From the NCBI GenBank assembly GCA_002269645.1, contig NIVC01001204.1, positions 248,001 to 312,000 on the forward strand: DNA of 64,000 nt, in the 5' to 3' direction. This document shows, piece after piece, positions 7,159 to 44,895 of the stretch; position 1 is the stretch's first letter, and each line of letters begins with the position of its first letter. The DNA comes from Macrostomum lignano. Lineage: Eukaryota. Below the pieces are notes generated by a model. The model was not told the DNA's origin and made no database searches. It saw only the letters and a program-made list of their open reading frames with translations. Made by a program: the position numbers and the translations under genes.

Positions 7159-8576
7159 TTACAAAATTACGAGTTCAACTGAAGCTGCAGCATCAAGTCT
7201 TTCCAGCTTCTGCCTGACCCAGCCGATCTTCTCCTCGTCCTGCGTCTCCATGGCGACGCGTCTCTCTTTCTCGATCATCTCCATCTGCTGCAGGCTGAGC
7301 TCCACGTGCTCGCGGCAGTCGCTGTAGTGAGCCAGAGTGAGCAGCTCCTCGAAGTCCGGGTCTCCAAGCAGCTGTTCAATCCAATGATCGAATGCGATTG
7401 CAGGTGCGCGATTGCGGAGCAGCTCAGCTTGGAGACTCCAGCTCAGGCAGCGGAAGTTCACGTACAGGTGGGAGGAGAGAGGCTGCGACAGTCTGGCTGT
7501 GAACAGAGTCTGCGTGAACTCGGGAAGGAATGGGAAGCGAGGCGGAGAGTCGCAGGGGAGGCAGAACCTCCACGCCCAGTCTGAGTCATTCGGCAGTTTA
7601 GTTGGGAGAAACTCATTTTCTCTCTCAATATACTTTGGCTCCAACCCTGACACAACCTGATTTCTCTGCAGCTCCATCGCGAGTCTCTCAGCCTCCTCAG
7701 ATTCTCCGAACTTCAAATGCGCCATGGCGGTCATGCACAGGGCGGCGCACTTGCACCACTGCAGCCGATGCTGATTCAGGTTACTGAGCTGCCTCATCAG
7801 GGTGTCTCTGTCGCTCGATTCCGACTGCAGCTCGCTCACACACTGTTGCACCACACTGTACACGTCTGCGAATTTGTAGTACATTTCTGAATAGTCAATT
7901 CCTTCCCTGATCTCCGTGACAGCAGGCGGCGCTGTCAGAGGCAGCAGAGTGAACGGGTGAAAGTAGAACTTCTCTGACTGCAGAGGTCTCACGAGTCTCC
8001 TTAGCTGCTCGACCACTCCGCCGATGTCGCTTCTCAGCTCACAAAGTCGGTCTCGAACCCTCGCCTTCGTGTTGTCGAAGTCGCCGCCGATTCCAGCGTT
8101 CTTGAAGTAGAGCGGAGCGTCGGGCATGAAGAAGTGCGGCATGCACTCATCGGGAGAGCTGCTCGAGTCGATGAAGCTCAGCATCATGTCGAGAGACTCC
8201 TTGAGCAGAGCGATCAGATTGTGGGGCTGCCAAGCTTCAGTTTTAGGATCTTTGCCATGCTTCTCCAGCATGAAGAATAGCAGAGTCTTTGCATGGTAGG
8301 TCTTGAGTCCAGGTGTGTCCAGAGTGAGCGGCAAGTGTCTCTTGAAGATGAACTTGATGAGGGTGAACAGCTGGCCCTGGACTGTGCTCAGCCGTCTCAT
8401 GATGTCTTTCTCTTTGAAGCTGAAGCTCACTCTGAGCTCGTTGGTCTCGCTCGGTCTGGTCGCTCGCACAAGGTGAACACAATTAGCATTTTTTATGCTG
8501 CAGCACTCGATCGCATGGCACGTGTCCTGTGCAGGCCGCACACCGCACGCGATGGCTGTCACTGCAGGTTGGCTGC
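7159..8576 (-). CDS. ANK-cGLR copy 1, exon 3: Mab-21/cGAS-like C-terminal lobe plus helical tail; gene = join(12924..10724,9792..9428,8576..7159), 1327 aa
   Basis: Acceptor CTGCAG|GC at 8576. Mab-21/cGAS-family motifs: QDTCHAIECC (third catalytic Asp, cf. DLVPAI), HLV..ELRVSFSFKEKDI (cf. WRLSFS.IEK), KTYHAKTLLF (cf. cGAS SYHVKTAFF), MPHFFMP (cf. NYFIP). Open to TAA at 7159. Confidence 0.88.
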
Positions 8577-9427
8577 CTGCAGTGCGCAGTGAGCGAAGAG
8601 TGGCTTTGTGGCGAGTGGAAAAGATGGGTCGGTTTTAAAGTGCAGATTTTCTCTTGGCTGTTTTCGAACAGTTTTCAGTGCATTGTTTGGTAAGACAAGA
8701 CCACAATGGGCAGTTACAGTTCATTAAAGATACACATACGTTTGTTAAAAATCTTTCCAAATATGCACATGCGATTAGTAGGGTTAGTGTGCAACTGCTT
8801 GAATGTGTTAGTTGAGTTCGTTCTATGTGGTGGTGAGTGATACAACTCTAATCAATGAAAGAAGCAAAGTAAAGTGAACCGCTTAGAAGTTTATTGGCAG
8901 GGAAAGAAAAAACTTAAACTTTTTTTGGTTGATTTGCAACTTCAGATTTTCTCTTGCTTGGTTTAGAATTTCGAGTGATATCATTGAGAAAATTATGAAA
9001 ATTATTTAAGTTAGTGTGCTTTGATTGTCAATAAGTCAATATCAGGACTCAGTGCCTCACAGCAAGGCACCAATCAGACAGTCAGATTGGCTTCGGTTTA
9101 TCTTGTTTGAAATTTCCAAGTGAGAGCAGCGGCACTCAGCAGAGCCATGCCGCCTACCGTGGGTCACCCAAGCACCGCTGCACCCACTCTGCTGCAATCG
9201 GAACCTGTGAGTTCAAAACCCAATGGCCCGGCTCAGCCAGTTGGCATCAGAGTTTTCTTTTCAATTTCGCCTGCCGCTTGTTTCAGCACCCAAGACGACA
9301 TTCGCAGTCACAGAAGCTGCTGGAGGCTGGGCGCCACTCGGTTGCGAATTTAAAATTGAGCAAGGTTAATGGGCTTCCAGTTGCATGCGGATCTCAGCAT
9401 TCTGATGATGAACCCAGCCTCACTCAC

Positions 9428-9792
9428 CTGCTCCCACTGCCACCTGTGCGTGGCCCTCCGTGACCTTCAGCCGAGTGGCTTTTTTGCAGGAGTCTGTATT
9501 TCTGTTGCAGAAACCTTTCAGATGGAACTCTTGCCCAGTAACCAGCACAGTCCAGTCAATGTCCGAGTCTGCAGCTGTCCTGCCGTTCACTTGCACCAGA
9601 CTGTTGGCCCAGCCCTCTGCGTAGCTGCCCGTCATCAGCCTGTCATCCTGTGTGAGGACTCGAGCGACTCCTTGCAGCCAGTCAGCCAGTCTCTGCTGAC
9701 ACTTTGCTCTCTGCTTGGTGAATCCCGCATCGCTGAGCAGTTGATGCAGCTCCTCGCTCAGGCGCCTGTCTTGCTGGGAGTCGTTTGAGAGC
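9428..9792 (-). CDS. ANK-cGLR copy 1, exon 2: nucleotidyltransferase catalytic motif
   Basis: 365-nt exon, acceptor ATTGCAG|G (phase 2), donor GCAG|GTGAGT (phase 1). Encodes MTGSYAEG...AADSDIDW, the pol-beta/cGAS GS...DxD motif. Confidence 0.85.
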
Positions 9793-10723
9793 CTGCAATG
9801 ATCCGAGTTGCTCAGAGTTGGATGGACAGAACAAGCACTCAGACTGGCATCTCAAGCAGGAGAGCTGAGAGTGCAGCTGCTGCAGCACTCAGACTGGCGT
9901 CTTAAGCAGGAGAGCTGAGAGTGCAGCTGCTGCAGCACTCAGTCAAACCCAATCTCAACCCTGCAATTTCTGCCCCAAGCTGCCAGCCTGATGGAAGGCG
10001 CAATGCGGCAGTGAAAGCCGAACCGGTCAGACTCACCGATGAAGCCCCGAATCCAAGCGGTGAGCGGCTGCCTGCCGGGCCTCTGGGCTTCTGCAATGCG
10101 GATAGGAAAGCCAGGGTTCTCACAGCAGTTGAGTCTGAGATTCTCAAGCGGCACAAATAACTTTAATAAGTCGGAAACTCATATTGTATTGTTACGTGTA
10201 GCTTTACAATACAATATGAGTTCCGCAGCTTGATAAAAATACTAACGCTTTTTTCAGGTAGCAAAATCAAAAAGCGGAGGGAGAGGCGGGCAGCAGCAGA
10301 TGACCGAGAGAAAGAAAACAGTGAGCAAGAGATGCGCGAACTGGGCTTGGCTGCTCATCCTGTCTGCCAGCAGGGATTTGGAACTTTTCTTTTAAGAAAA
10401 AAAACGGCTATTGCAGAGGCATGAAACAATGAAGCCAATGTAGTGAAAAGACCAGAAATTGTGATTTTCAGTAGGGGGGGGGGGGTTGAAAACAGGGATA
10501 ACAACGCACGCAAGCCAGCAAAGCGAAACAAGGCGAGGCTGGCGCAACGCATGGGGCTACAAAAGCCCCCACTGACACCCAGCAAAAACCCGACCGGCAA
10601 GCACCCAAGCCCCGCTAAAAGCGATTGGCCAGCAAGAAAAACATTCCCAAAGACTAGAGAATAAAACATAAGTAAAACACAATACTATACTGAAAAGAAC
10701 CGTGAAATTCTCGTTGCACTCAC

Positions 10724-12924
10724 CCCGCTCCACTGAGATCCAGCAGCCGCAGCACCTGCCGCTGCTCAAATCGCTGTGCCACCTGAGCACACGTCAGACC
10801 CCGACCGTCTCGATGACTCGCATCCGCTCCTCTGTCCATCAGAGCCTTGGCTGCTCGCACGTGACCGGCTTCGCACGCTCGTGACAGAGCAGTCCGACCC
10901 TGATTGTCTTCAGCACGCACTGACGCACCGAGATCGATGAGTTTCTCAATGAGCTCGTGATGACCTGCATCAGCTGCCAGCATGAGAGCAGTGGCTCCAG
11001 TGCGGTCTGGCAGATCGACATGCTGTGTGCTGACTCGCTCATCATTGATCAAGGTGGCAGCAAGAGCGACGTGTCTTTGAGAGATGGAGAGACGGAGCAG
11101 CTGTGTGATGAGAGCTGGCTGCATTCGAGAGAGGGTGTCGGTGAGAACAGAGTTCCTGCCTTCGATGGCCATTGCTGCAGTGAAGCTGAGGATGGAGCTG
11201 GATTGGAAGAGCCAGTCGGGCTTGAGGCCGAGGAAGGCAACGGCATTTTTGTCAAGACAAGAGCACGCCGCGACCGCGTATTGGAAACGGAGATTCATTT
11301 TCTGATCTGGACTTGAAAGACACGAGATGAGGAACTTTGCAGCCTCTAATTGACCATTTCTTGCAGCAGATTCGGCAGCGTCGATGCAACAGCGATCTCT
11401 GATTGCTTTGTCAGCGACTTGTGTCACGAGAAACTTGACGACTTCTAAGTGACCATATCTTGCAGCAGATTTGGCAGCGTCGATGAAGCAGCAATCTCTG
11501 TTTTCTTGGTCAGCGACTTGTGGCACGAGAAACGCAACGACTTCCCACTGACTGTTTCTTGCAGCAGATTCGGCAGCTTCGATGCAGCAGCGATCTCTGT
11601 TTGCTTGGTCAGCGACTTGCTGCACGAGAAACTTGACGACTTCTAAGTGACCATTTCCTGCAGCAGATTCGGCAGCGTCGATGCAGCAATGATCTCTGTT
11701 TTGTTGGTTAGCGATTTGTGGGACGAGAAACTTGACGACTTCTAAGTGACCGTTTCTTGCAGCCAATTTGGCAGCGTTGATGCAGCAGCGATCTCTGTTT
11801 GCTTGGTCAGCGACTTGTGACACGAGAAACTTGACGACTTCTAAGTGACCATTTCCTGCAGCAGATTCGGCAGCGTCGATGCAGCAATGATCTCTGTTTT
11901 TTTGGTTAGCGATTTGTGGGACGAGAAACTTGACGACTTCTAAGTGACCGTTTCTTGCAGCCAATTTGGCAGCGTTGATGCAGCAGCGATCTCTGTTTGC
12001 TTGGTCAGCGACTTGCTGCACGAGAAACTGGACCACTTGCCACTGACTATTTTCTGCAGCAGATACAGCAGCTTCAATGCAGCACTGATCTCTGTTTTGT
12101 TGGTTAGCGATTTGTGGGACGAGAAACTTGACGACTTCTAAGTGACCATGTCTTGCAGCCAATTTGGCAGCGTTGATGCAGCAGCGATCTCTGTTTGCTT
12201 GGTCAGCGACTTGTGACACGAGAAACTTGACGACTTCTAAGTGACCATTTCCTGCAGCAGATTCGGCAGCGTCGATGCAGCAGCGATCTCTGTTTTTTTG
12301 GTCAGCGACTTGTGGGACGAGAAACTTGACGACTTCTAAGTGACCATGTCTTGCAGCCAATTTGGCAGCGTCGATGCAGCAGCGATCTCTGTTTGCTTGG
12401 TCAGCGACTTGTGGGACGAGAAACTTGACGACTTTTAAGCGACCAAGTTTTCCAGCAAATTTAGAAGCTTCGATACAGCAGCGATCTCTGTCCTCTTGGG
12501 CAGCGAATTGTCGTGCAAGAAATTCGACGACTTCTAAGTGACCATGCGTTGAAGCCAATTGAGCAGCGTCAAAGCAGCAGCGATTTCTGTTTGCTTGGTC
12601 AGCGACTTGTGATATGAGATACTTGACGACTTTTAAGCGACCATTTTTTGCAGCAGATTTGGCAGCTTCGATGCAGCCGCTATGTCTGTTTGCCTTGTCA
12701 GCGACTTGTGTCACGAGAAACTTGACGACTTTTAAGTTATCATATATTGCTGCAAGTTTGGTGGCGTCGATGCAGCACTGATCTCTGTTTGGTTGATCAG
12801 TGACTTGCCGCACGAGAAACTTGACGTCTTCTAGGTGACCTTTCATTGCAGCATCTATTGTAGGTTCTACGACTATTAAGTCACCTTTCTGTTCATACCT
12901 TGGAAGGCTTTGGTTTTGGCCCAT
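10724..12924 (-). CDS. ANK-cGLR copy 1, exon 1: 15 variant 33-aa ankyrin-like repeats, spacer, ~3 canonical ankyrin repeats
   Basis: Repeat HLEVVKFLVPQVADQANRDRCCIDAAKLAARNG; canonical repeats DRTGATALMLAADAGH and DNQGRTALSRACEAGH. The ORF's TGA lies inside the donor GG|GTGAGT at 10723 (phase 2). Confidence 0.9.
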
Positions 12925-13077
12925 TTTGCAAGAGAGCCGTATTAAAGTGCAAGCAACACTATAAAGAAGGCGAAACTGGGGGACAGAGGAAGTAACAGGG
13001 GAAGAAAAAGAAGGAGGCAGAGAAAGAAAAAGAAGATTGAGAGAGGGGAAAAGAAAGAAGAGATGGAGAAAGAGAAA

Positions 13078-13377
13078 CGGCTGCTGTCAGAGTGGCAGAT
13101 GTCAGTCACGGCTGCTGTCAGAGCGGCAGATGTCAGTCACGGCTGCTGTCAGAGTGGCAGATGTCAGTCACGGCTGCTGTCAGAGTGGCAGATGTCAGTC
13201 ACGGCTGCTGTCAGAGTGGCAGATGTCAGTCACGGCTGCTGTCAGAGTGGCAGATGTCAGTCACGGCTACTGTCAGAGTGGCAGATGTCAGTCACGGCTG
13301 CTGTCAGAGTGGCAGATGTCAGTCACGGCTGCTGTCAGAGTGGCAGATGTCAGTCACGGCTGCTGTCAGAGCGGCAG
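13078..13377. repeat. 31-bp minisatellite upstream of copy 1, ~10 copies
   Basis: Unit CGGCTGCTGTCAGAGTGGCAGATGTCAGTCA. Confidence 0.95.
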
Positions 13378-13923
13378 GTGTTTCAAAGGTTTGTGCAGCC
13401 GGCTGCCAGAAAGATTTTACCGCCTCATCTCTCAGCTGCCCTCCCTTTTGCAGCCTTTGGCGAGGCCGACCACCCCCGGCCTGAGCAGCCGAAACTTCTC
13501 TCCCGAGCATGAGCGCTGAGTTTGAGCTTGAGGAGGCGGTCAAATGTGCAAGAAATGCTTTGTTAAACTGGGCCAGTTTTCTCTCTCACTCTGCCCACTG
13601 GCCTTCTTAACTGCAGCAGCTGCAGAGCATCGGTTGCATAGCAACAGGGCTCTGGCTCTCTGCCGATTCTCCTATGCTTTCACCTGTTCCTCTCGTGCGC
13701 AGCTCAGGCAGTTGAGAGTCTGCTGGGCTGAGTTTGGCGAGTGCATTTAGCAGCAATAATTAACATTCTTTTGCTTTTTTACAGAAGCCTCTCATCACTG
13801 CCGCTCCTTCTGTTTCAAGTTTTGAACAGGCGGCAACCGGCCCCTGTGGCGAGACTTGGCTTGCAATTGGGCAAGCAGAAACTTCCAAAAGTTGGGGGAG
13901 CAGAGCTGTTTATTCAGATTGCC

Positions 13924-14366
13924 TCACCATCCCTACAGTCACCATCCTTACAGTCACCATCCCTACAGTCACCATCCCTACAGTCACATCCCTACAGTCA
14001 CCATCCCTACAGTCACCATCCTTACAGTCACCATCCCTACAGTCACCATCCCTACAGTCACCATCCCTACAGTCACCATCCCTACAGTCACCATCCCTAC
14101 AGTCACCATCCCTACAGTCACCATCCCTACAGTCACCATCCCTACAGTCACCATCCCTACAGTCACCATCCCTACAGTCACCAACCCTACAGTCACCATC
14201 CCTACATTCACCATCCCTACAGTCAGCATCCCTACAGTCACCATCCCTACAGTCACCATCCCTACAGTCACCAACCCTACAGTCACCATCCCTACAGTCA
14301 GCATCCCTACAGTCACCATCCCTACAGTCACCATCCCTACAGTCACCATCCCTACAGTCCCTACAG
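13924..14366. repeat. 15-bp minisatellite, ~29 copies
   Basis: Unit CAGTCACCATCCCTA. Confidence 0.95.
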
Positions 14367-14724
14367 CCCGGCAAGAGACAGGGGTGCCCGGCAAGAGACA
14401 GGGGAGCCCGGCAAGAGACAGGGGTGCCCGGCAAGAGACAGGGGTGCCCGGCAAGAGACAGGGGTGCCCGGCAAGAGACAGGGGTGCCCGGCAAGAGACA
14501 GGGGTGCCCGGCAAGAGACAGGGGTGCCCGGCAAGAGACAGGGGAGCCCGGCAAAAGACAGGGGAGCCCGGCAAGAGACAGGGGTGCCCGGCAAGAGACA
14601 GGGGTGCCCGGCAAGAGACAGGGGTGCCCGGCAAGAGACAGGGGTGCCCGGCAAGAGACAGGGGTGCCCGGCAAGAGACAGGGGAGCCCGGCAAAAGACA
14701 GGGGAGCCCGGCAAGAGACAGGGG
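14367..14724. repeat. 20-bp minisatellite, ~18 copies
   Basis: Unit CCCGGCAAGAGACAGGGGTG, abutting the 15-bp array. Confidence 0.95.
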
Positions 14725-15673: not shown

Positions 15674-16117
<444 letters not shown>

Positions 16118-16255
16118 TTGGCATCGCAAGCTAGGCCAACCCCCCACAATTTGGGGTTTTGACTTTTCACTAACAAGTTGAGTGCCAGCCCAGCTTGAAA
16201 GGCCGCCACTGCGAAGTAAACAAGCGCCAAACAGCAAAAGTACACAGTGCTCAGA

Positions 16256-19200
16256 ATGTCCCAGTCAATGACAGCTCCTAGCACATCGGAGGTGCCAAGG
16301 ATCAACATCTCGCCACCAGAGCAATTCCTGCCTCAACCGGGACCGCCAACGAGGCCGTGGAGTGAGTGGAAGAGCCTGTTTGACATCTACTTAATGGCGG
16401 CGGGCTTCGACACTCTACCAGACGTGAGAAAGCGAGCCCTGCTTCTGCACTGCCTGGGTGCGGAAGGACAGCGGATCTTCGCAGCGATGCAGCCACCGCC
16501 ATCTCAGAATTCGGATGGTGAAAAGACACCGCTGAGATTCGACGAGACCGTGAAGCTGCTGAAGAAGCAGTTTGGTGGCAAGACCAACGTGGTGGCGGAG
16601 CGCCACAGGTTTCGGCAGCGAGGGCAGCGACCCGGTGAGAAAATCGCTGACTTTGTGGCAGTGCTGTACACGCTGGCCGGCTCGTGCGAGCTCGGCGGCA
16701 TGACGGACGAGATGATTCGCGACCAGATCGTGGAGAAGGTCAGCGACAGGCGGATCAGAGAGCGCCTGCTCATCGAGGACGGCCTGACGCTCAAGACGGC
16801 GGTGACGCTGAGTCAGCAGTGGGAGACCAGCATCGCGGAAGCCAGTGCGATCGATACTGGCGGCGCAGTTGCCATGGCAAGCCGAGGCGAGGCGGAGGTG
16901 AACAAGGTGCAACATCAGTTCGGAAAGTCCAGAGCTCAAGAACGGGCGGCTGCCGGGCGAGAGTCCTGTCCGAACTGCGGAGGCGGCCACAACAGGCGAG
17001 CGCGATGTCCTGCTGAAGGCAAGTCTTGTTATGCCTGTGGCAAGCAGAACCATTTTGGCAGCATGTGCAGGTCGCAGGGCACCAAGGTGGCCCAGGTCGG
17101 AGACGAGAGCAGCCGCGAGGTGTTCACCGTGCGTGGCACGACCAGTCCCGACATCAGGTGCCGGCTGAAGGTCCAGGGCAGCTGGCTGAGCCTGCTGGTT
17201 GACTCGGGCGCGAAAGTGTCCATTCTATCGGAGAGGACCTACCGGAGGCTCGGGTCCAAGGCGCCGCTGCAGCCATCCAACAGGAAGCTCATCGCGTACA
17301 ACGGCAAGGCTATCGACGTGCTGGGACAGGCGGTGCTGTCGGTCAACTACCGCGGGCAGAGTGTGCCGTTCTTCTGCTTCACAGTAGTGCAGCAGGGATC
17401 CGACATCATGGGCACTGATCCGATTCAGCAGCTCAGCTTCCAAGTGGTGGACCGGGACGGCGACCTTGTGCGCACCGTGGACAAGACCAGGCAGCTGCCG
17501 GCCTGGCTGCCAGACCGCTTCGAGCAGCTGACGCGAGGACTCGGCCGGATTCGAGGGTTCGAACACCGGCCCCGAGTGAACCCCGCAGTGCCTCCAGTGG
17601 CGCAGCCTCTCCGCCGGACGCCGCTCAGCCTCAAGGAGAATGTCCAAGCTGAGATCGATCAGCTTCTAGCGGACGGGATCGTCGAGGAGATTCAGGCATC
17701 CGAGTGGATTTCGAATCTGGTGGTCGTCCCAAAGCCTGACGGCAAGATCCGAATCTGCAATGACCTCAGGTGCCCCAACAAGGCAATTGTGCCGGACAAG
17801 CAGCCTCTGCCGACATTCGAGGAGCTGACGACGGAGTTCAAGGGCTCGACGGTTTTCTCAAAACTAGATCTGAACTCATCGTATCTGCAGCTCGAGCTCG
17901 CCGAGGACAGACGCGATATGACGGCCTTCATCACGGAAAAGGGTCTCTATCGGTACAAGCGGGTTTGTTTCGATCTCAACAGCGCTTCGGCAGCTTTCCA
18001 GAAGGTGCTGAGCAAGATTCTGCACGGCTGCTCAGGAACGGTGCACTACATCGACGACATAGTCGTGCACGCTGCCAGTGAGGCTGAGCATCACAAGCGG
18101 CTCACTGCGGTGCTCGACAAGCTGCTGGCCCACGGCGTCACTCTGAACGCATGCAAGTGCCAGTGGGCTGCTGAGTCTGTGCAGTTCCTGGGCTACATCG
18201 TCTCTGCAAGCGGCCTGCGACCGATGCAGTCAAACGTGGACGCTATCGAGCAGGTGCCGGAGCCGAAGAGCGCTGAGGCGGTGGCGGCATTTCTTGGAAT
18301 GGTGAAATTTTATGCGAACTTTCTTCAAAACCTGTCGGATGTCGCCGAGCCGCTGCTGAGGCTGCTGAGGAAAGACGTGCCCTGGGACTGGTCCGCAGAC
18401 TGCCAGAAGGCCTTCACAACGCTCAAGAAGATGGTGCTGGCGCCGACCTGTCTGAGGTTCTTCAGCCCGGATGAGAAGATCATCGTTGCCTGCGACAGCT
18501 CGGCGCACGCTCTGGGCGCCGTTCTGCTTCAAGAAGACGGCGCCGGCGTCCGGAGACCAGTCGCGTTTGCGTCCAGAACCCTGTCAGCGACTGAGCGCAA
18601 GTACTCCGCGTCTAAAAGAGAGGCATTGGCATGCATCTTCGCCTGTGAGAGGTGGCACTATTTCCTGTTCGGCCGAAGATTCGAGCTGCACACGGATCAT
18701 CAGGCGCTGACTACGTTGCTGACGGCTCAGGGCAGCGGCCACCGGCCATTGAGATTGCACCGGTGGGCCGACCGCCTGCTCGCGTATGACTTCCAGGTCT
18801 GCCACGTTCCGGGGAAAAAGAACACCGTTCCGGACTTTTTGTCGCGACACGGCGCCTGCAACGACAGCTTCGAGGAGGACCCGGCAGAGCTCCAAGTGAA
18901 CGCCGTCCTGCTGTCTGGCGCGCTGCGGATCGTGAGCCCAAGCGAACTGGCTGAGGCATCTCTACAGGACCCAGTGATCAGCCAGGCGATCGAGATGACG
19001 CTGGAGGGCTGGCCGAGTTCCATCAAGCAGTTGAGGCCGGAGCTGCAGCCGTTCTGGCGGATCAAGGAACAGCTCACAGTCTGGAATGAAGGCAAGTGCC
19101 TGGCGAATGGGTTGCGCGCGGTGATCCCCGCGTCGTTGAGAGAGAAGACGCTGCAGCTGGCGCACTTTGGGCACCTCGGAGTGAGCAGAATGAAGCAGCA

Positions 19201-20286
19201 CTGCCTGGACTCCGTCTGGTGGCCGCAGATCGACAGCCAAATTGAGGAGTTCGTGCGGCACTGCGAGGCCTGCCTGCTCAGCGAGAAGAACTTTAAGCCA
19301 TCCAAGACGGTGCTGACTCCGACGAAGTGGCCGACGCGACCTTGAGAGGAGCTTCAGCTCGACATCTTCGGGGAGCTGCATTCGGCGCCGAACTCAAGTC
19401 GCTTCATTCTGGTGCTGTAAGACCTGCATTCGAAGTGGCCAGAAGCAGCCTGCATGTCCACAGTGACCACAGCTGACGTGATCGACGCCCTGACGACGTG
19501 GTTCAGCCGCTGGGAACTCCCAAAGAGCATCAACACGGACGGCGGGCCGCAGTTCATGTCCGGTGACTTCAAAGACTTCCTCCAGCGCTGCGGCATCCAG
19601 CACCGCCAGTCGCCGCACTACCACCCGCAAGGTAACGCTGCGGTCGAGCGCTTCAACCGGTTTCTGAAAGACGGCCTGAAGACGCACCTGCAGGACGGCT
19701 ACGGTTTCAAAGACGCGGTGAGGGCGCTGCTGTGGTCATACCGGGCCACCCCGCACGCACTGACGGGGGTGTCACCGGCGGAGCTGATGAGCCGGAAAAT
19801 CAGCACCCCGCTGACTGCACTGCAGCGAAGGACACCATCGCAGCACAACCTGGCAGGCAGCATCAGGCAGAAGCAGCAGAGAGTCTTTAGCAAGCTCAAC
19901 TCGGCCAGGAGGCCTCCGCCGGGGTTCAAGGTCGGCGACTGGGTGCGCGTGAGGCGGCCGTTCGCGCGTGGCAAGCTGAGCAGCCGGCTGTCCGAGCCAC
20001 TGGAGATCTCGAGAATCGCGAGCGCCACCACAGTGATCCTCAGTGACGGCTCTCGGTGGCACGTCGACAACTCGACAACTGCGTGCGGGTGGAGCGGCCG
20101 GCGGGAGCGCTGCCGCAGTGGCCCGCGCCAGCCGCCACGACCGCTCCGACACCCGCGGCGGCGGCGGGAGCGGCGGCGGAGGCGGCCAAAGAGCTGCCGC
20201 CGCATCAAGGAGCACCGACGGCAATTCGAGCGAGTGTGAGGAGTCGGGCTCCACCGCAGTGGTACGAGGATGTGGTGACTCATTGA
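16256..20286 (+). pseudogene. Gypsy gag-pol (gag, CCHC knuckle, protease, RT, RNase H, integrase), disrupted
   Basis: CYACGKQNH zinc knuckle, LLVDSGA protease, HYIDDIV RT, ACDSS..HTDHQAL RNase H, HCEAC and NTDGGPQF integrase. In-frame stops at 19343-19345 (TGA, likely from TGG) and ~19418 (TAA, likely from CAA). An 8-bp duplication (TCGACAAC) near 20063-20078 shifts the C-terminus. Confidence 0.93.
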
Positions 20287-20508
20287 TTGCAATGACTGAA
20301 AAGGACTTTTGAGTTGCAAGCCTTTGGTTTTCGAGTTTTCTATTTGAGGGTTTTGAAATTGGAACTTAATGTCGAACTCTTTCAAATATTTTAATCCGAT
20401 ATCAAAGAAATATTTCATTCTTAATATTCATGTCTGTTTTATTGCTCTTGAATATGTAATCGATTTTCGAATATTTCATCGACAAGGCAACTCGTTCGCG
20501 AGGGAGAG

Positions 20509-20681
20509 TGAATTTTGTGTAGTTGGTTTGCGGATATGTACGTCTGCTATGTACATCTGTTTTCCGATATTGATCTGTCGCAGCTAAATGAATATATAAG
20601 TATAAATATACCAGTCGGTAGGCCAACTTGGGCTAAGTTCGTGTGTACACCTAAATTCAGTCTGACTTTCTCAACACAACA
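20509..20681 (+). repeat. 3' LTR of Gypsy element (173 bp)
   Basis: Follows the polypurine tract and carries an extra AATT after the initial TG relative to the 5' LTR. Confidence 0.95.
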
Positions 20682-20727
20682 CCTTCCTGGCTTCCTGGCT
20701 TCCTGGGCCTTCCTGGCTGGTCCTTTG

Positions 20728-26369: not shown

Positions 26370-26371
26370 GT

Positions 26372-26926: not shown

Positions 26927-27193
26927 CTTGCCCTCCTCACAGCGGAGGATGGTCAGTTGATGGAGACCAAGGTGGAGGTTTGTGCCGTGCAGGGGTGCCG
27001 TAGCCCAGCGGTTCTAGCGCAGGCTCTGGTGTGCCAGCGACCCAGGCTCGATTCCAAGTGCAGTCACATTAATTTGGGGCTGAATTAGAATCACGGCTTG
27101 GCTCTGCTCGTGCAATTAACGGCCTTGAGAGCCAACACGCCAAGGCGCAGTGAAGTGTACATGCCTAACGATAAAATAAAGTTAGGGCCGCTG

Positions 27194-28313
27194 TAGAAGT
27201 CGTCAAGTTTCTCGTGCCACAAGTTGCTGACCAAGTAAACAGAGATCGCTGCTGCATCGACGCTGCCAAATCTGCTGCAAGAATTGGTCACTTGAAAGTC
27301 GTCAAGTTTCTCGTGCCACAAGTCGCTGACCAAGCAAACAGAGATCGCTGCTGCATCGACGCTGCCGAATCTGCTGTAGAATGTCGTCAGTGGGAAGTCA
27401 TCAAGTTTCTCGTTCCACAAATCGCTGACCAAGCAAACAGAGATCGCTGCTGCATCGACGCTGCCAAATCTGCTGTAAGAAATCGTCAGTGGGAAGTCGT
27501 CAAGTTTCTCGTGCCACAAATCGCTGACGAAGCAAACAGAGATCGCTGCTGCATCATAGCTGCTGAATCTGCTGCAATAAATGGTAATTTAAAAGTTGTT
27601 AAGTTTCTCGTGCCACAAGTCGCTGACCAAGCAAACAGAGATCGCTGCTGCATCGAAGCTGCCAAATCTGCTGCAAGAAATGGTCAATTAGAGGCTATAA
27701 AGTTCCTCATATCGTGTCTCTCAAGTCCGGATCAGAAAGCGAATCTGCATTTCCATTGCGCAGTCGCGGCTTGCTCTTGTCTTCGTGAAGATGTCGTTAC
27801 CTCCCTCGGCCTCGAGCCCGACTGGCTCTTCCAATCCAGCTCCATCCTCAGCTTCACTGCAGCAATGGCCATCGAAGGCAGGAACTCTGTTCTCACCGGC
27901 ACTCTCTCTCGAATGCAGCCAGCTCAAATCACACAGCTGCTCCGTCTTTCCATCTCTCAAAGACACGTCGCTCTTGCTGTCACACTGATCAATAAAAAGC
28001 GAGTCAGAAAAAAGCATGTCGATCTGCCAGACAGCACTGGAGCCACTGCTCTCATGCTGGCAGCTGATGCAGGTCATCACGAGCTCATTGAGAAACTCAT
28101 CGATCTCGGTGCGTCAGTGCATGCTGAAGACAGTCAGGGTCGGACTGCTCTGTCACGAGCGTGCGAAGCCGGTCACGTGCGAGCAGCCAAGGCTCTGATG
28201 GACAGAGGAGCGGATGCGAGTCATCGAGACGGTCGGGGTTTGACGTGTGCGCAGGTGGCACAGCGATTTGAGCAGCGGCAGGTGCTGCGGCTGCTGGATC
28301 TCAGTGGAGCGGG
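27194..28313 (+). CDS. ANK-cGLR copy 2, exon 1 (5'-truncated): at least 5 variant repeats plus canonical ankyrins; gene = join(<27194..28313,28784..29148,29433..30901)
   Basis: Homology begins mid-repeat at the LINE junction. Donor GG|GTGAGT at 28314 (phase 2). First in-frame ATG at 27865. Confidence 0.82.
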
Positions 28314-28783
28314 GTGAGTGGGCCGAGAAGTTTGCGAATCTTTTCAGTACTGTATCGTGTTGTAGTAAAGCATTTTGGTGATTTTATAAGGCATGAGAAT
28401 CTCAGACACAACTGTTGTAAGAACCCTGGCTTTTCTTCGCGCCTTGCAGAAGCCAAGAGGCCCGGCAGGCAGCTGCTCACAGCCTAAATTCGGACCTTTA
28501 TCGGTGAGTCTGACCTCTTCGGCTTTCACTGCCGCATTGCGCCTTCCAACAGGCTGGCAGCTTGGCGCAGAAATTGCAGCGAAACTTAGGAGAGTTGAGA
28601 TTGGGTTGGACTCTCAGCTCTCCTGCTTGAGATGCCAGTCTGAATGCTGCAGCAGCTTCAGTCTCAGCTCTCCTGCTTGAGATGCCTGTCTGAGTGCTGC
28701 AGCAGCTGCACTCTCAGCTCTCCTGCTTGATCTGTCCATCCAACTCTGAGCAAATCACCCACACGCATCTCGGATCATTCCAG

Positions 28784-29148
28784 GCTCTCAGACGACTCAC
28801 GGCAAGACAGGCGCCTCAGCGAGAAGCTGCATCGACTGCTCAGCAATGCGGGGTTCACCTGGCAGAGAGCAAAGTGTCAGCAGAGACTGGCTGACTTGCT
28901 GGAAGGAGTCGCTCGAGTCCTCACACAGGATGACAGGCTGATGACGGGCAGCTACGCAGAGGGCTGGGCCAACAGTCTGGTGCAAGTGAACGGCAGGACA
29001 GCTGCAGACTCGGACATTGACTGGACTGTGGTGGTTGCTGGGCAAAAGTTCCATCTGGCAGGTGGCTGCAAAAGAAATACGGACTCCTGCAGAGACGCCA
29101 CTCGTCTGAAGGTCACGGAAGGCCACGCACAGGTGGCAGTGGGAGCAG
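28784..29148 (+). CDS. ANK-cGLR copy 2, exon 2: nucleotidyltransferase motif
   Basis: 365 nt, ATTCCAG|G acceptor, GCAG|GTGAGT donor. GSYAEG...DSDID intact. Confidence 0.85.
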
Positions 29149-29432: not shown

Positions 29433-30901
29433 GCAGCCAACCTGCAGCCACAGCCACGGCGTGCGGTGTGCGGCCTGCACAGGACACGTGCCATGCGATC
29501 GACTGCTGCAGCAGTTTCTGTGAGGACAGATATAAAAAACTGCTTTTATTGGCTGTTGATGTTCACCTCGTTCAGGCGACCAGACCGAGCTCGACCAACG
29601 AGCTTAGAGTGAGCTTCAGCTTTCATGAGAAACGCATCATGAGAAACCTGAGCACAGTCCAGGGCCAGCTGTTCACACTCATCAAGTTCATCTTCAAGAG
29701 ACACTTGCCGCTCACTCTGGACACACCTGGACTCAAGACCTACCATGCAAAGACTCTGCTCTTCGCAATGTTGGAGAAGCATGGCACAAATCCTCAAACT
29801 AAGGCTTGGCAGCCCCACAATCTGATCGCTCTGCTCAAGGAGTCTCTCGACATGATGCTGAGCTTCATCGACTCGAGCAGCTCGCCCGATGAGTGCATGC
29901 CGCACTTCTTCATGCCCGACGCTCCGCTCTACTTCAAGAACGCTGGAATCGGCGGCGACTTCGACAACACGAAGGCGAGGGTTCGAGACCGACTTCGTGA
30001 GCTGAGAAGCAACATTGGCGGAGTGGTCGAGCAGCTAAGGAGACTCGTGAGACCTCTGCAGTCAGAGAAGTTCTACTTTCACCCGTTCACTCTGCTGCCT
30101 CTGACAGCGCCGCCTGCTGTCACGGAGATCAGGAAGGGAAGTGATCGCTGTCCAGAAATGTACAACAAGTTCGCAGACGTGTACAGTGTGTTGCACCAGT
30201 GTGTGAGCGAGCTGCAGTCGGAATCGAGCGACAGAGACACCCTGATGAGGCAGCTCAGTCTTCTAAATGAGCTGCAGTGGTGCAAGTGCGCCGCCCTGTG
30301 CATGACCGCCATGGCGCGCTTGAAGTTCGGAGAATCTGAGGTGGCTGAGGGACTCGCGATGGAGCTGCAGAGACATCAGGTTGAGTCAGGATTGAAGCCA
30401 CAGGATATTCGAGAAAACGTAGAAAACGATATAATAGTGCCAGAAAACACAGACTGGGCGTGGAGGTTCTGCCTCCCCTGCGACTCTACACCTCGCTTCC
30501 CATTCCTTCCCGAGTTCACGCAGACTCTGTTCACAGCCAGACTGTCGCAGCCTCTCTCCTCCCACCTGTACGTGAACTTCCGCTGCCTGAGCTGGAGTCT
30601 CCAAGCTGAGCTGCTCCGCAATCGCGCACCTGCAATTAAACTGGAGGATTGGAAGCAAGAGCTGGAAGAAGACCCGGACTTGGAGGAGCTGCTCTCTCTG
30701 GCTCACTACAGCGACTGCCGCGAGCACGTGGAGCTCAGCCTGCAGCAGATGGAGATGATTGAGAAAGAGAGACGCGTCGCCATAGAGACACAAGACGAGG
30801 AGAAGATCGGCTGGGTCAGGTGGAAGCTGGAGCGACTTGATGAAGCCCGCCAGAGTCCTCAAAGTCGAGTCGCAAAGTCGAGGTCGGAAAAGGAAGACTG
30901 A
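29433..30901 (+). CDS. ANK-cGLR copy 2, exon 3: Mab-21/cGAS-like domain
   Basis: CTCTGCAG|GC acceptor, the same Mab-21 motifs as copy 1, open to TGA at 30901. Confidence 0.88.
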
Positions 30902-34741: not shown

Positions 34742-36675
34742 TGGCAGCGGGAGGCACTTGCTGTGAAGTTTGGCTGCCTCCGATTCGAGCACTACCTCAG
34801 CGGCTGCCCAAGGTTCACCATCGTGACAGACCACCGCCCGCTGGTACCACTCTTCCAGCCGGGGTCTCGGCCGCCGCCCAGAATCGAGCGTATGGCACTG
34901 AGAGTGCAGCACCTCAGCTTCAACATCATCTACCAGCCCGGGCCGCAAAACCCAGCCGACGTGCTCAGCAGGCAGCCGCAAATGCAGACAACCGACAACC
35001 CCGGCGAAGTGCTCGACCGGCAGTTCATCAACGCCATCGCCCTCGGATCAACGCCACAAGGTCTCAGCTTCGAGTCAATCAAGCAGGCGGCCAGGCTCGA
35101 CGGTGTCACTCAGGCAGCCATCTCGGCACTTCAGACCAACCAGTGGACCAGCAACGACCATGAGCTCCGTGCGCTTGCCTGCATCCGGCAAGAACTGTCG
35201 GCCCACGACGGCGTTCTGCTTCGCGGTTCTTCGATCATCGTGCCAGCGAGTCTTCGGCGAGTAGTACTCCAGCTGGCGCACAAAGGCCATCAGTGCTGGC
35301 GGAAAACGCTAGACCGGCTTCAAACGAAGGTGTGGTGGCCAGGCATGAGAGGCGACTGCCAGGTCTTCGTGCAAAGCTGCCTCGCCTGCCAAGCAACGTC
35401 GCCTAAAACGACCAATCCGCCACCTCTTCAGCCCTCGCAGCTCCCCGACGGAGCCTGGCTCGTCCTCGGCATGGACTTCTACGGTCCGGTGCAGGACAAA
35501 ATGCTGCTAGTGACAACAGACCTTTACTCAAAGTTTCCAGAGATCAACATCGTCAGTTCGACCTCCGCAGAGGCTGTGCTGCCACACCTGAAAACTCTCT
35601 TCAGCAGGTACGGCATCCCACAAGAAATCATCAGCGACAACGGCCCACCCTTCAATTCTGCAGAGTTCCACAACTTTCTCGCTGAGCACGGCGTCAAGCA
35701 CCGCCGCATCTGCCCGCTGCACCCGGAGGCCAACGGAGCGACCGAGCGCGTCAACCGATGCGTCAACAAGGTCGTCAGGGCGGCCATCGCCGAAGGCCGC
35801 AGCTGGCGCAGTGCCCTAGACGACTGGCTCCTCGCATACCGCGTCACTCCTCATTCGGCAACCGGGTCGCGCCGGCCGAATTGCTAATGGGCCGGACCTT
35901 CAACGACACCGTCCCGTCGGCGCGCCCCTCGCAGCCCGTGTACCATCATCGCACACAGCTGACCCAGCGACACTCGGCCTACACCAGAGCGATGGCCAGG
36001 GACTTCAACCGTTCCCGGAGGGCCAAGGCCTGCAGCGTGAGGCCGGGTACTGCGGTGCTACGGAGGCGGAATCAGCGAACAAAGACTCAGACACCCTTCG
36101 AGGTCGAGCCCTGGACCGTCGTGGACAGGCGGGGTGACTCCTACGTGCTACAACAGGGCGACCGCACCTGCACTCGACACCTGACGCACATCCGCCCGCT
36201 GGTGGCGGCAGAGGGCGCTGCGGCGAACGCGGAACCGACGCCGCCAGAATGCGGCATTGCCCAGCGGCCGCATCCCCGCGCGGCCAAAGACAAGCCAATC
36301 AGCTACAAGGACTGATTTGGGGTTGGGGCTGATTAAGGACTGGAACAATTGTACGAGTACTTCGATGACTGTCATTCGAGCTTTTATCCCCTCTTTGTTT
36401 CTTTCTGCTTTGGGAGAAGTGTTTTTGCCACCTAGTTGAATTAGCCTAGCAGGGCGGTGCCTGTTCCCAGCGCGCTCTCTCTCTCTCTCGCCCGCTCTGT
36501 CCTAATCAATAGCGTAGCAATGTACATGTTCATGAATGTACGCATCGTTCACTGTCGCCTAACAAATATATATATATTGGGCCCACGGCCATATGGGGCC
36601 TTAAGCCTTTCGTTTCGCGCTCACACTGCCGCCTTCACTATCGCAGTCTTTACACTTCAGTGGAGCTAGGACACT
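34742..36675 (+). mobile_element. 5'-truncated Gypsy retrotransposon fragment (RNase H end, integrase, probable 3' LTR)
   Basis: EALAVKFGC...TDHRPL RNase H, AHKGH...CLAC, GMDFYGP, SDNGPPF and NGATER integrase. Frameshift near 35868, stop at 36315. Purine tract GGGAGAAG at 36412-36419 then a putative LTR from 36420, whose end is uncertain. Confidence 0.85.
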
Positions 36676-39778: not shown

Positions 39779-41277
39779 TCAGTCTGATTCAACCAAGATT
39801 GCTTCTCTGACCTCGAGTTTTTGTAGTCTCTCCACCTTCCGCTTGACCCTGACCCAGCCGATCTTCTCCTCGTCCTGCGTCTCCATGGCGACGCGTCTCT
39901 CTGTCTCGATCATCTCCATCTGCTGCAGGCTGAGCTCCACGTGCTCGCGGCAGTCGCTGTAGTAAGCTAGAGTGAGCAGCTCCTCCAAGTCCGGGTCTTC
40001 TTCCAGCTCTTGCTTCCAATCCTCCAGTTTAATTGCAGGTGCGCGATTGCGGAGCAGCTCAGCTTGGAGACTCCAGCTCAGGCAGCGGAAGTTCACGTAC
40101 AGGTGGGAGGAGAGAGGCTGCGACAGTCTGGCTGTGAACAGAGTCTGCGTGAACTCGGGAAGGAATGGGAAGCGAGGCGGAGAGTCGCAGGGGAGGCAGA
40201 ACCTCCACGCCCAGTCTGAGTCTTCTGGCAACTTTTTAAGGTACCTGCACTTGCTGTCTTCTTGAATATCCTCTGGCTTCAACCCTGACTCGACCTGATG
40301 TCTCTGCAGCTCCATCGCGAGTCTCTCAGCCTCCTCAGATTCTCCGAACTTCAAATGCGCCATGGCGGTCATGCACAGGGCGGCGCACTTGCACCACTGC
40401 AGCTCGTGCAGGAGACTGAGCTGCCTCATCAGAGTGCCTCTGTCGCTCGATTCCGACTGCAGCTCGCTCACACACTGGTGCAACACACTGTACACGTCTG
40501 CGAACTTGTAGTACATTTCTGAATAGTCAATTCCTTCCCTGATCTCCGTGACAGCAGGCGGCGCTGTCAGAGGCAGCAGAGTGAACGGGTGAAAGTAGAA
40601 CTTCTCTGACTGCAGAGGTCTCACGAGTCTCCTTAGCTGCTCGACCACTCCGCCAATGTTGCTTCTCAGCTCACGAAGTCGGTCTCGAACCCTCGACTTC
40701 GTGTTGTCGAAGTCGCCGCCGATTCCAGCGTTCTTGAAGTAGAGCGGAGCGTCGGGCATGAAGAAGTGCGGCATGCACTCATCGGGCGAGCTGCTTGAGT
40801 CGATGAAGCTCAGCATCATGTCGAGAGACTCCTTGAACAGAGCGATCAGATTGTGGGGCTGCCAAGCCTCAGTTTCAGGATCTGTGCCATACTTCTCCAG
40901 CATTGTGAAGAGCAGAGTCTTTGCATGGTAGGTCTTGAGTCCAGGTGTGTCCAGAGTGAGCGGCAAGTGTCTCTTGAAGATGAACTTGATGAGGGTGAAC
41001 AGCTGGCCCTGGACTGTGCTCAGTTCTCTGATGATGTCTTTCTCTTGGAAGCTGAAGCTCACTCTGAGCTCGTTGGTCGAGCTCGGTCTGGTCGCCCGAA
41101 CGAGGTGAACTGTATCCATGTATATCCATGTATATCCATATATCCATGCCATGTATTTAATATTAAGAAGTTTTCTAATTTTGTCCTCACAGAAACTGCT
41201 GCAGCACTCGATCGCATGGCACGTGTCCTGTGCAGGCCGCACACCGCACGCCGTGGCTGTCACTGCAGGTTGGCTGC
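39779..41277 (-). CDS. ANK-cGLR copy 3, exon 3: Mab-21/cGAS-like domain; gene = join(44895..43940,42503..42139,41277..39779), 939 aa
   Basis: CTCTGCAG|GC acceptor at 41277, Mab-21 motifs intact, open to TGA at 39779. Confidence 0.88.
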
Positions 41278-42138: not shown

Positions 42139-42503
42139 CTGCTCCCACTGCCACCTGTGCGTGGCCCTCCGTGACCTGCAGTCGAGTGGCGTTTCTGCAG
42201 GAGTCCTTCCATTTTTTGCAGCCACCTTCCAGATGAAACTGCTGCCCAGCAACCAGCACAGTCCAGTCAATGTCCGAGTCTGCAGCTGTCCTGCCGTTCA
42301 CTTGCACCAGACTGTTGGCCCAGCCCTCTGCGTAGCTGCCCGTCATCTGCCTGCCATCCTGTGTGAGGACTCGAGCGACTCCTTTCAGCCAGTCAGCCAG
42401 TCTCTGCTGACAATTTGCTCTGTGCTCGGTGAATCCCGCATCGTTGAGCAGTCGATGCAGCTCCTCGCTCAGGCGCGTGTCTTGCTGGGAGTCGTCTGAG
42501 AGC
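42139..42503 (-). CDS. ANK-cGLR copy 3, exon 2: nucleotidyltransferase motif
   Basis: 365 nt with the same splice sites as copies 1 and 2. GSYAEG...DSDID intact. Confidence 0.85.
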
Positions 42504-42560
42504 CTGGAATGATCCGAGATGCGTGTGGGCGACTTGCTCTGAGTTGGCTGGACAGAACAG

Positions 42561-43317
42561 GCAGGAGAGCTGAGACTGCAGCTGCTGCAGCACTCAGACT
42601 GGCATCTCAAGCAGGAGAGCTGAGACTGCAGCTGCTGCAGCACTCAGACTGGCATCTCAAGCAGGAGAGCTGAGACTGCAGCTGCTGCAGCACTCAGACT
42701 GGCATCTCAAGCAGGAGAGCTGAGACTGCAGCTGCTGCAGCACTCAGACTGGCATCTCAAGCAGGAGAGCTGAGAGTGCAGCTGCTGCAGCACTCAGACT
42801 GGCATCTCAAGCAGGAGAGCTGAGACTGCAGCTGCTGCAGCACTCAGACTGGCATCTCAAGCAGGAGAGCTGAGAGTGCAGCTGCTGCAGCACTCAGACT
42901 GGCATCTCAAGCAGGAGAGCTGAGAGTGCAGCTGCTGCAGCACTCAGACTGGCATCTCAAGCAGGAAATCCGAGAGTGCAGCTGCTGCAGCACTCAGACT
43001 GGCATCTCAAGCAGGAAATCCGAGAGTGCAGCTGCTGCAGCACTCAGACTGGCGTCTCAAGCAGGAGAGCTGAGAGTGCAGCTGCTGCAGCACTCAGACT
43101 GGCATCTCAAGCAGGAGAGCTGAGAGTGCCAGACTGGCATCTCAAGCAGGAGAGCCGAGAGTGCAGCTGCTGCAGCACTCAGACTGGCATCTCAAGCAAG
43201 AGAGCTGAGAGTGCCAGACTGGCATCTCAAGCAGGAGAGCCGAGAGTGCAGCTGCTGCAGCACTCAGACTGGCATCTCAAGCAGGAGAGCTGAGAGTGCA
43301 GCTGCTGCAGCACTCAG
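42561..43317. repeat. 50-bp intronic VNTR, ~15-16 copies
   Basis: Unit GCAGGAGAGCTGAGACTGCAGCTGCTGCAGCACTCAGACTGGCATCTCAA. Only ~2 copies in the same intron of copies 1 (9835-9942) and 2 (28612-28728). Confidence 0.95.
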
Positions 43318-43939
43318 TCCAACGCAATCTCAACCCTTTTGAGTTTCGCTGCAATTTCTGCCCCAAGCTGCCAGCCTGATGGAAGGCGCAATGCGGCAGT
43401 GAAAGCCGAACCGGTCAGACTCACCGATGAAGCCTTGAATCTAAGCCGTGAGCGGCTGCCTGCCCGGCCTCTGGGCTTCTGCAATGCGGATAGGAAAGCC
43501 AGGGTTCTCACAGCAGTTGAGTCTGAGATTCTTAAGCGGCAAAAATCACTTTAATAAGTCGGAAACTCATATTGTACTGTTACGTGTAGCGCTCACGTTC
43601 CGCAGCTTGATAAAAATACTAACGCTTTTTTCAGGTAGCAAAATCAAAAAGCGGAGGGAGAGGCGGGCAGCAGCAGATGACCGAGAGAAAGAAGACAGTG
43701 AGCAAGAGATGCGCGAACTGGGCTTGGCTGCTCATCCTGTCTGCCAGCAGGGATTTGGAACTTTTCTTTTAAGAAGAAAAGACGGCAATTGCAGAGGCAT
43801 GAAACGCAATGAAGCTAATGTAGTGAAAAGACCAGCAGGATTGGCCAGCAGGAAAAACATTCCAAAAGACTAAAGAATAAAACATAAGTAAAACACAATA
43901 CTATACTGAAAAGACCTGTGAAATTCTCGTTGCACTCAC

Positions 43940-44895
43940 CCCGCTCCACTGAGATCCAGCAGCCGTAGCACCTGCCGCTGCTCAAATCGCTCTGCCACCT
44001 GAGCACACGTCAGACCCTGACCGTCTCGATGACTCGCATCCGCTTCTCTGTCCATCAGAGCCTTGGCTGCTCGCACGTGACCGGCTTCGCACGCTCGTGA
44101 CAGAGCAGTCCGACCCTGACTGTCTTCAGCACGCACTGACGCACCGAGATCGATGAGTTTCTCAATGAGCTCGTGATGACCTGCATCAGCTGCCAGCATG
44201 AGAGCAGTGGCTCCAGTGCTGTCTGGCAGATCGACATGCTCTGTGCTGACTCGCTCATCATTGATCAAGGTGGCAGCAAGAGCGACGTGTCTTTGAGAGA
44301 TGGAGAGACGGAGCAGCTGTGTGATGAGAGCTGGCTGCATTCGAGAGAGGGTGTCAGTGAGAACAGAGTTCCTGCCTTCGATGGCCATTGCTGCAGTGAA
44401 GCTGAGGATGGAGCTGGATTGGAAGAGCCAGTCGGGCTTGAGGCCGAGAAAGGTTACGACATCTTTGCGAAGACAAGAGCAAGCCGCGACTGCGCAATGG
44501 AAATGCAGATTCGCTTTCTGATCCGGACTTGAGAGACAGGAGATGAGGAACTTTACAGCCTCTAATTGACCATTGCTTGCGGCAGATTCGGCAGCGTCGA
44601 TGCAGCAGCGATCTCTGTTTTGTTGGTCAGCGACTTGTGGCACGAGAAACTTGACGACTTCTAAGTGACCATTGCTTGCGGCAGGTTTGGCAGCGTCGAT
44701 GCAGCAGCGATCTCTGTTTGCTTGGTCAGCGACATGTGACACGATTAACTTGACGACTTCTAAGTGACCATTTCCTGCAGCAGTTAGTATAGTACTGGTA
44801 ATTACGAGTGGGAAACCATTTCGTGCAGCCCGTTGAGCGTTTTGTGAGATTTCGCTGCTGGTGACGACCCGATGTCGGCTTTGGTTTTGGTCCAT
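43940..44895 (-). CDS. ANK-cGLR copy 3, exon 1: 2 variant repeats, spacer, canonical ankyrins
   Basis: ATG at 44895. Donor GG|GTGAGT at 43939 (phase 2). Confidence 0.88.

Follow-up and report, generated by a model that had tools for sequence, protein, structure and literature searches.

A 64,000-nucleotide (nt) stretch of the genome of the flatworm Macrostomum lignano (assembly GCA_002269645.1, contig NIVC01001204.1, positions 248,001 to 312,000 of the forward strand; hereafter the window) contains three colinear copies of a gene in which an ankyrin-repeat region is fused by splicing to a cGAS-like receptor (ANK-cGLR). We consider it likely, at about 60%, that these copies form a young cluster of four-exon Macrostomum ANK-cGLR paralogs encoding putative ligand-activated enzymes that make a nucleotide messenger. 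From the N-terminus to the C-terminus, such a gene would encode a variable, degenerate ankyrin array with Cys-Cys pairs, three canonical ankyrin repeats, a linker supplied by a micro-exon, a nucleotidyltransferase (NTase) and an acidic C-terminal domain. Among the pattern-recognition receptors of animals, cGLRs are a major family, and for most of its members no ligand is known.

Gene structure of the three copies

A tblastn search of the window with the copy 1 model recovered copy 1, on the minus strand, and exactly two further copies, copy 2 on the plus strand at 27.2-30.9 kb and copy 3 on the minus strand at 39.8-44.9 kb (Table 1). The arrangement is head-to-head and tail-to-tail, with copies 1 and 2 divergent and copies 2 and 3 convergent, and the proteins are 86-88% identical over the roughly 810 residues common to all three. 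Joining the three long exons of copy 1 yields 3984 nt in which the sole stop codon is terminal, using the junctions GAGCGGG/GTGAGT, TTGCAG/GCTC, GAGCAG/GTGAGT and CTGCAG/GCAG (slashes mark the splice sites), and a shift of one base at either junction introduces 20-28 stop codons. The equivalent join in copy 3 yields 2820 nt, or 939 amino acids (aa), and the exons of copy 2 show the junction sequences of the other copies and the same 365-nt middle exon. In all three copies, the TGA that ends the ankyrin open reading frame (ORF) lies inside the GTGAGT donor, and both GSYAEG...DSDID and QDTCHAI are encoded. No frameshift or premature stop was found in the coding sequence (CDS) of any copy, each approximately 2.4-4 kb long. 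A first-pass annotation of the window had claimed this fusion by splicing, and the splice sites, phases and in-frame joins that it gave, including the 3984-nt and 2820-nt totals, were all reproduced. As the three colinear copies share their junctions with M. lignano paralog gene models, which derive from RNA-seq-guided transcript assembly (Wudarski et al. 2017, PMC5730564), the in-frame joins are not a product of chance and the fusion is upheld.

The three-exon gene model of that annotation probably needs amending, as it had overlooked a probable micro-exon in intron 1. All three copies contain, inside this intron, a 54-nt in-frame segment with TTGCAG/.../GTGAGT splice sites and a phase-compatible open frame, the translation of which (SPEARQAAAHRLD...) is included in the annotated paralogs P0002, P0006, P0007 and P0012 and skipped in P0008. 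At the locus of P0007 on another contig (L001), the annotated order is an ankyrin exon, an 84-nt intron, the micro-exon, a 99-nt intron, an exon carrying the Gly-Ser and Asp-x-Asp motifs (GS/DxD exon), a 17-kb intron and the Mab-21 exon. The GS/DxD exon of this locus ends in ...VAVGAG and its Mab-21 exon opens with SQPAETA, which places the junctions where the window copies have them. Because the RNA-seq-guided paralog models include the micro-exon, the window genes probably have four exons as well, which brings the predicted CDS to 4038 nt in copy 1 (1345 aa), 3027 nt in copy 2 and 2874 nt in copy 3. Between copies 1 and 3, the micro-exon is no more conserved than its surroundings (~91% identity vs ~92% in the flanking intron), so its support consists of the kept splice sites, the open frame and the paralog transcript models rather than of extra constraint. 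Intron 1 also holds a 50-nt minisatellite, with 2.2 copies at 9834-9942 in copy 1, 2.4 at 28610-28730 in copy 2 and 11.4 at 42561-43129 in copy 3, and much of the variation in intron length comes from this difference in copy number.

The nucleotidyltransferase half

On the strength of its modelled fold, the C-terminal half of these proteins is a cGAS/Mab-21 nucleotidyltransferase. An AlphaFold2 model of the 593-aa C-terminal half reached a predicted local distance difference test score (pLDDT) of 84.1 and a predicted template modelling score of 0.86. Among its best 50 Foldseek matches in the PDB, cGAS came first, followed by MAB21L1, MB21D2 and MiD51. The best match, 4k9b_A (E 1.1e-5, probability 1.0, target-normalised TM-score 0.51), covered 373 aligned columns, and the alignment to cGAS, over ~370 columns, extends across the whole cGAS domain. 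Among sequence profiles, Pfam Mab-21_C (PF20266) scored 29.7, 30.6 and 27.8 bits in copies 1, 2 and 3, respectively, against a gathering cutoff of 24.1, and a family profile searched against PDB sequences retrieved cGAS at E 5.5e-5, Drosophila cGLR1 at 1e-3 and MAB21L1 at 0.13. The alignment behind this profile was trimmed, since with untrimmed homologs ankyrin matches swamp the results.

The predicted placement of the motifs follows the fold, with a strand at residues 51-54 of the model leading into G55-S56, D77-I-D79 opening strand 77-91 and D139 located within strand 137-147; in the three-exon numbering of copy 1, the putative acidic triad corresponds to D811, D813 and D873. The three copies do not differ in their Gly-Ser, Asp-x-Asp and third-Asp motifs, in line with the earlier statement that the DxD pair and a candidate third Asp are intact throughout. 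The block from M53 to T81 is 100% identical among the copies, and their substitutions are concentrated in the N-terminal spine helices and the loop that follows strand 2. The NTase core has an isoelectric point (pI) of only 6.9-9.1, one of its differences from cGAS and animal cGLRs. Copy 3 carries an in-frame (CATGGATATA)n-like insertion at 41110-41160, translated as NIKYMAWIYGYTWIYMDT, in the loop that follows the strand of the third Asp, and copy 1 has a deletion (8478-8496) in the same loop relative to all paralogs.

Compared with cGAS and animal cGLRs (human and mouse cGAS, Drosophila cGLR1 and human MB21D2), the window proteins are predicted to have the same bilobed Mab-21/cGAS NTase fold, with GS, [DE]h[DE] and third-acid motifs on equivalent strands, an RVSFS-EK motif and a Mab-21_C lobe. 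They differ in a sequence identity of only ~14%, in the unmatched PF03281 domain, in having no evident Zn-thumb and a longer GS-to-DxD loop, and in the addition of the N-terminal ankyrin array and of the acidic 250-aa C-terminal domain. The non-catalytic Mab-21 proteins MAB21L1 and MiD51 have the same fold and are among the Foldseek matches; they have no predicted functional active site according to Li et al. 2023 (PMC9980059), whereas the triad is intact in the window proteins. A MAB21L1/2-type non-catalytic assignment was not applied, given the acidic triad in all three copies.

The ankyrin region and the C-terminal domain

Pfam ankyrin matches were far above threshold (Ank_2 1.3e-71, Ank_4 1.4e-58 and Ank 3.2e-46). 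The underlying 99-nt tandem array comprises 15.2 units in copy 1, 4.9 in copy 2 and 2.3 in copy 3, and motifs at an exact spacing of 33 aa occur 15, 6 and 3 times, respectively. This corresponds to 15, at least five and two to three degenerate ankyrin repeats, in each case followed by three canonical C-terminal repeats (e.g., GATALMLAADAGHHELIEKLIDLGA), and the array is indeed variable in length, as had been claimed. With near-identical catalytic cores attached to arrays of such different lengths, the cluster is a compact natural series for tests of the ankyrin module, in an animal for which transgenesis is established (PMC5730564).

The consensus of the 33-aa array unit is PQVADQANRDRCCIDAAKLAARNGHLEVVKFLV, in which AA-xx-GH-LEVVKFLV is kept and the ankyrin G-x-TPLH is replaced by C-C-I-D-A-A-K/E. 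Units vary most at ankyrin positions 13, 25, 31, 14, 6 and 16. Agreement with the positions that form the binding surface of DARPins is only partial, with positions 2, 13 and 14 variable and positions 3, 5 and 33 invariant. An invariant Cys-Cys pair (NRDRCCIDAA) is present in every degenerate repeat, giving ~30 cysteines in the copy 1 array, and this pattern suggests metal binding, redox chemistry or acylation. At the extreme N-terminus, MGQNQS of copy 1 (12907-12924) fits the N-myristoylation consensus, as does that of P0007, and MDQNQS of copy 3 (44878-44895) does not.

The C-terminal ~250 aa form an acidic (pI 4.9), helical region that was modelled separately with a pLDDT of 84.1. This domain (7159-7900 in copy 1, and the equivalents) is conserved across the Macrostomum family, with the motif WAWRFC-PCD-P-F-FLPEF. 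Foldseek found no significant PDB match for it, the best being a weak TPR-like hit at E 0.25, and a TPR fusion label was dropped on that account.

Relatives and previously described systems

A protein database search with the cGLR half returned 43 proteins, essentially all of them M. lignano entries named 'hypothetical protein BOX15_Mlig...', at up to 86% identity, and in most of them Pfam recognises Ank as well as Mab-21_C. When 1.84 billion representative proteins (50%-identity clusters) were searched with a profile, 833 matched at E<=1e-3, of which 91 reached E<=1e-30, and all strong matches for which the source name was looked up were from M. lignano. Judged by these named matches, the ANK-cGLR family seen here is a very large Macrostomum-specific expansion. 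Apart from Mab21-like proteins, most platyhelminths lack cGLRs according to Li et al. 2023 (PMC9980059), and the family documents one flatworm lineage in which cGLRs were kept and hugely expanded. None of the three window proteins has a 100% match in the protein database (best 86%), which makes them either further paralogs or products of a different assembly.

The novelty implied by the first-pass annotation could not be sustained. Li et al. 2023 (PMC9980059) already list ANK-cGLR as a domain architecture and describe some cGLRs with TPR or ankyrin modules, 87% of cGLRs being single-domain. Their Table S2 includes M. lignano PAA68676.1, the same protein as P0007, with Ank_2 domains and 83% identity to copy 1, and according to their Table S3 the NTase parts of five M. 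lignano cGLRs, including PAA68676.1 and PAA93208.1, were cloned for a screen with double-stranded DNA (dsDNA) and poly I:C. By sequence, the window genes are additional paralogs of this catalogued family, and the discovery is incremental because both the family and its architecture have been published. Our literature search found no paper on the functional characterisation of any ANK-cGLR.

The M. lignano ANK-cGLRs of that study (PAA68676.1 / BOX15_Mlig016402g1 and PAA93208.1 / BOX15_Mlig001946g3) are 77-86% identical to the window proteins in the cGLR half and have the four-exon layout, junctions, ankyrin N-terminus and C-terminal extension of the window genes, together with the motifs GSYAEGWANSL...DSDIDW...QDTC. 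They differ in array length, the degenerate array of copy 1 (15 units) being much longer than that of PAA68676.1 (~3). Coral fusions (Fig. 4C of the same study) likewise combine a cGLR core with a protein-interaction repeat module, a likeness of architecture that could stem from common origin or from independent fusion.

Divergence, proposed function and alternatives

Synonymous divergence (dS) between pairs of copies is ~0.1, by which measure the copies are recently duplicated, and the reading frames of all copies have stayed intact over more than 800 codons at this divergence. The ratio of nonsynonymous to synonymous divergence (dN/dS) is 0.62-0.73 overall and 1.0-1.9 in the GS/DxD exon (121 codons), where the counts are small. 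A family that is young and evolves fast, with its active site protected, would be expected to look like this, although partly relaxed constraint is compatible with the pattern too.

Copy 2 departs from the other two at its 5' end. Its homology to copies 1 and 3 starts abruptly at ~27179-27194, where it adjoins unrelated sequence that includes a tRNA-like A/B-box segment and fragments of long interspersed nuclear elements (LINEs), and no ATG is present upstream of an internal Met codon at 27865. From this codon (MAIEGR), the start used by the annotated paralog P0002, copy 2 could encode a protein of 778 aa. The earlier description of a three-gene cluster thus needs qualification, as three paralogous copies are present and one of them is 5'-truncated. 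ARAGORN calls no tRNA gene at the abutting segment, which is single-copy in the window and missing from L001, and for this reason the label of short interspersed nuclear element would be only a guess.

The best-supported mechanism, given the modelled fold and its motifs, would be that of a ligand-gated nucleotide-signal synthase. The proteins would then serve innate immunity as pattern-recognition enzymes, producing a nucleotide second messenger upon ligand binding, and the ankyrin array, perhaps with the C-terminal domain, would be a protein-interaction module that recognises a non-nucleic-acid ligand or partner, or that restrains the enzyme. The hypothesis that the ankyrin array gates second-messenger synthesis is plausible. 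A further-reaching version, in which the length-variable array is a fast-evolving recognition surface for pathogen or self proteins that directly licenses cGLR catalysis, defining a repeat-based branch of cGLRs that senses ligands other than nucleic acids, is speculative and we regard it as unlikely. On that version, with cGAS and STING lost from relatives of this flatworm lineage, the messenger might have a receptor other than STING.

Several observations weigh against a ligand-activated enzyme encoded by all three genes. Pfam PF03281, the Mab-21 NTase core, has no match in any copy even at E<=10, and when hhalign compared the family profile with a human cGAS catalytic-domain sequence, the alignment was confined to the C-lobe, at a probability of 44.8%, and gave no independent placement of the catalytic residues; the assignment of the N-lobe and active site therefore rests on the predicted structure and the motif pattern. 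The spacing between GS and DxD is 20 residues, compared with the classical 9-13, copy 2 has no start codon for its ankyrin array, and a dN/dS of 0.6-0.7 could reflect relaxed constraint. The 15 active cGLRs that were studied in depth by Li et al. 2023 (PMC9980059) belong to insects, anemones, molluscs, hydras and corals, with no flatworm among them, so no activity with dsDNA or poly I:C is documented for the close paralogs PAA68676.1 and PAA93208.1. On the side of the downstream pathway, no STING or other effector gene is present in the window, in accordance with the first-pass annotation, the planarian S. mediterranea has neither cGAS nor STING, and the copy of Table S5 of Li et al. 2023 (PMC9980059) that we consulted has no M. 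lignano entry.

Among the alternatives, the one deserving most attention is a non-catalytic Mab-21 scaffold or adaptor, comparable to MAB21L1/2, MiD51 or shrimp Mab21, that would signal through contacts of the ankyrin and C-terminal regions and whose acidic triad would be kept for nucleotide binding or by inertia. We consider this rather improbable. The presence of MAB21L1 and MiD51 among the structural matches points in its direction, as do the fact that Li et al. count no flatworm enzyme as active and the loss of DxD in some distant Macrostomum paralogs (KDSIKW in P0032, DCDINW in P0025), and crustacean Mab21 proteins reportedly work outside the canonical nucleotide-signal paradigm (PMC12928593). 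However, all three copies and most family members keep GS, DID and the third Asp unchanged while the residues around these diverge, and Li et al. 2023 (PMC9980059), who describe Mab21L1/2/3 genes as having no predicted functional active site, cloned M. lignano proteins for their cGLR screen and did not group them with Mab21L.

The same divergence data could also come from a largely non-functional cluster, that is, from recent segmental duplicates decaying in a transposon-rich and highly redundant genome. The overall dN/dS and its value of at least 1 in the GS/DxD exon would be expected in that case, and so would the truncation of copy 2 beside transposon sequence and the microsatellite insertion (copy 3) and deletion (copy 1) in one coding loop; the Mlig_3_7 assembly is, moreover, known as highly duplicated (PMC5730564). 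Yet at dS ~0.1 every CDS remains free of frameshifts and premature stops, each of the three copies has kept its splice sites, at the micro-exon as well, the active-site block is perfectly conserved, and copy 2 retains the capacity to encode a protein from the Met of P0002, which makes wholesale decay quite improbable. Finally, the ankyrin ORF and the Mab-21 exons might be separate genes joined in frame by coincidence, since the unspliced ankyrin ORF does end at a TGA. This explanation is effectively refuted by phases and splice motifs that are identical in three diverged copies, by dozens of transcript-based M. lignano protein models that hold both Ank and Mab-21_C, and by the same junctions at the paralog locus L001.

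Flanking sequence

Table 1. Features of the window, with positions counted from its first nucleotide. LTR, long terminal repeat; RT, reverse transcriptase.
Feature	Position	Strand	Remarks
Copy 1 exon 1	10724..12924	-	ATG start (MGQNQS...); ~15 degenerate 33-aa ankyrin repeats, linker, three canonical repeats
Copy 1 99-nt tandem array	11345..12853	-	15.2 units, 81% match; the degenerate ankyrin array
Copy 1 exon 1 end	10724	-	GG/GTGAGT, phase 2
Copy 1 micro-exon (SPEARQAAAHRLDSGLH)	10037..10090	-	Phase 2 in, phase 2 out; probable
Copy 1 365-nt exon	9428..9792	-	Spine helices and NTase N-lobe (predicted)
Copy 1 Gly-Ser codons	9629..9624	-	
Copy 1 Asp-Ile-Asp codons	9563..9555	-	
Copy 1 last exon	7159..8576	-	Mab-21_C helical lobe, ~250-aa acidic C-terminal domain, stop
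Copy 1 third catalytic Asp codon (putative)	8526..8524	-	In last exon
Copy 2 exon 1	27175..28313	+	5'-truncated; at least five degenerate plus canonical ankyrin repeats
Copy 2 micro-exon, 54 nt	28450..28503	+	Open in frame
Copy 2 GS/DxD exon, 365 nt	28784..29148	+	
Copy 2 last exon	29433..30901	+	Third Asp, Mab-21_C, C-terminal domain, stop
Copy 3 exon 1	43940..44895	-	ATG start (MDQNQS...); two to three degenerate plus canonical ankyrin repeats
Copy 3 micro-exon, 54 nt	43425..43478	-	Open in frame
Copy 3 GS/DxD exon, 365 nt	42139..42503	-	
Copy 3 last exon	39779..41277	-	In-frame microsatellite-like insertion ~41110..41160
Satellite arrays upstream of copy 1	13077-13381, 13924-14359, 14366-14724		
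Satellite arrays upstream of copy 3	45041-45535, 46067-46498		
Ty3/gypsy LTR retrotransposon	15951-20681	+	Between divergent copies 1 and 2; 167-nt LTRs 98% identical
Ty3/gypsy gag/protease/RT/RNase H/integrase ORF	16247-19345	+	
Ty3/gypsy integrase piece	19454-20239	+	
LINE fragments (endonuclease and RNase H ORFs)	22992-26015	-	Adjoin truncated 5' end of copy 2
tRNA-like A/B-box sequence	26950-27195		Adjoins truncated 5' end of copy 2
Second gypsy integrase fragment	34763-35887	+	Between convergent copies 2 and 3
ORF with WSC carbohydrate-binding domain	52481-53218	-	Pfam 3.8e-12
TNP-like (P-element/THAP9-type) transposase ORF	62467-63306	-	Near window end

Beyond the three genes, the window holds the transposon sequences listed in Table 1 and an ORF with a WSC domain, probably an exon belonging to an unrelated gene. 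Arrays of 31-mer and 15-mer satellites, together with a 20-mer, are located just upstream of copies 1 and 3, and the same satellites are found upstream of the M. lignano paralog on the other contig (L001, 7700-9950) at 93-98.7% identity, as expected of DNA from M. lignano or a very close relative. From this shared position, the satellite arrays seem to travel with the 5' flank of the gene.

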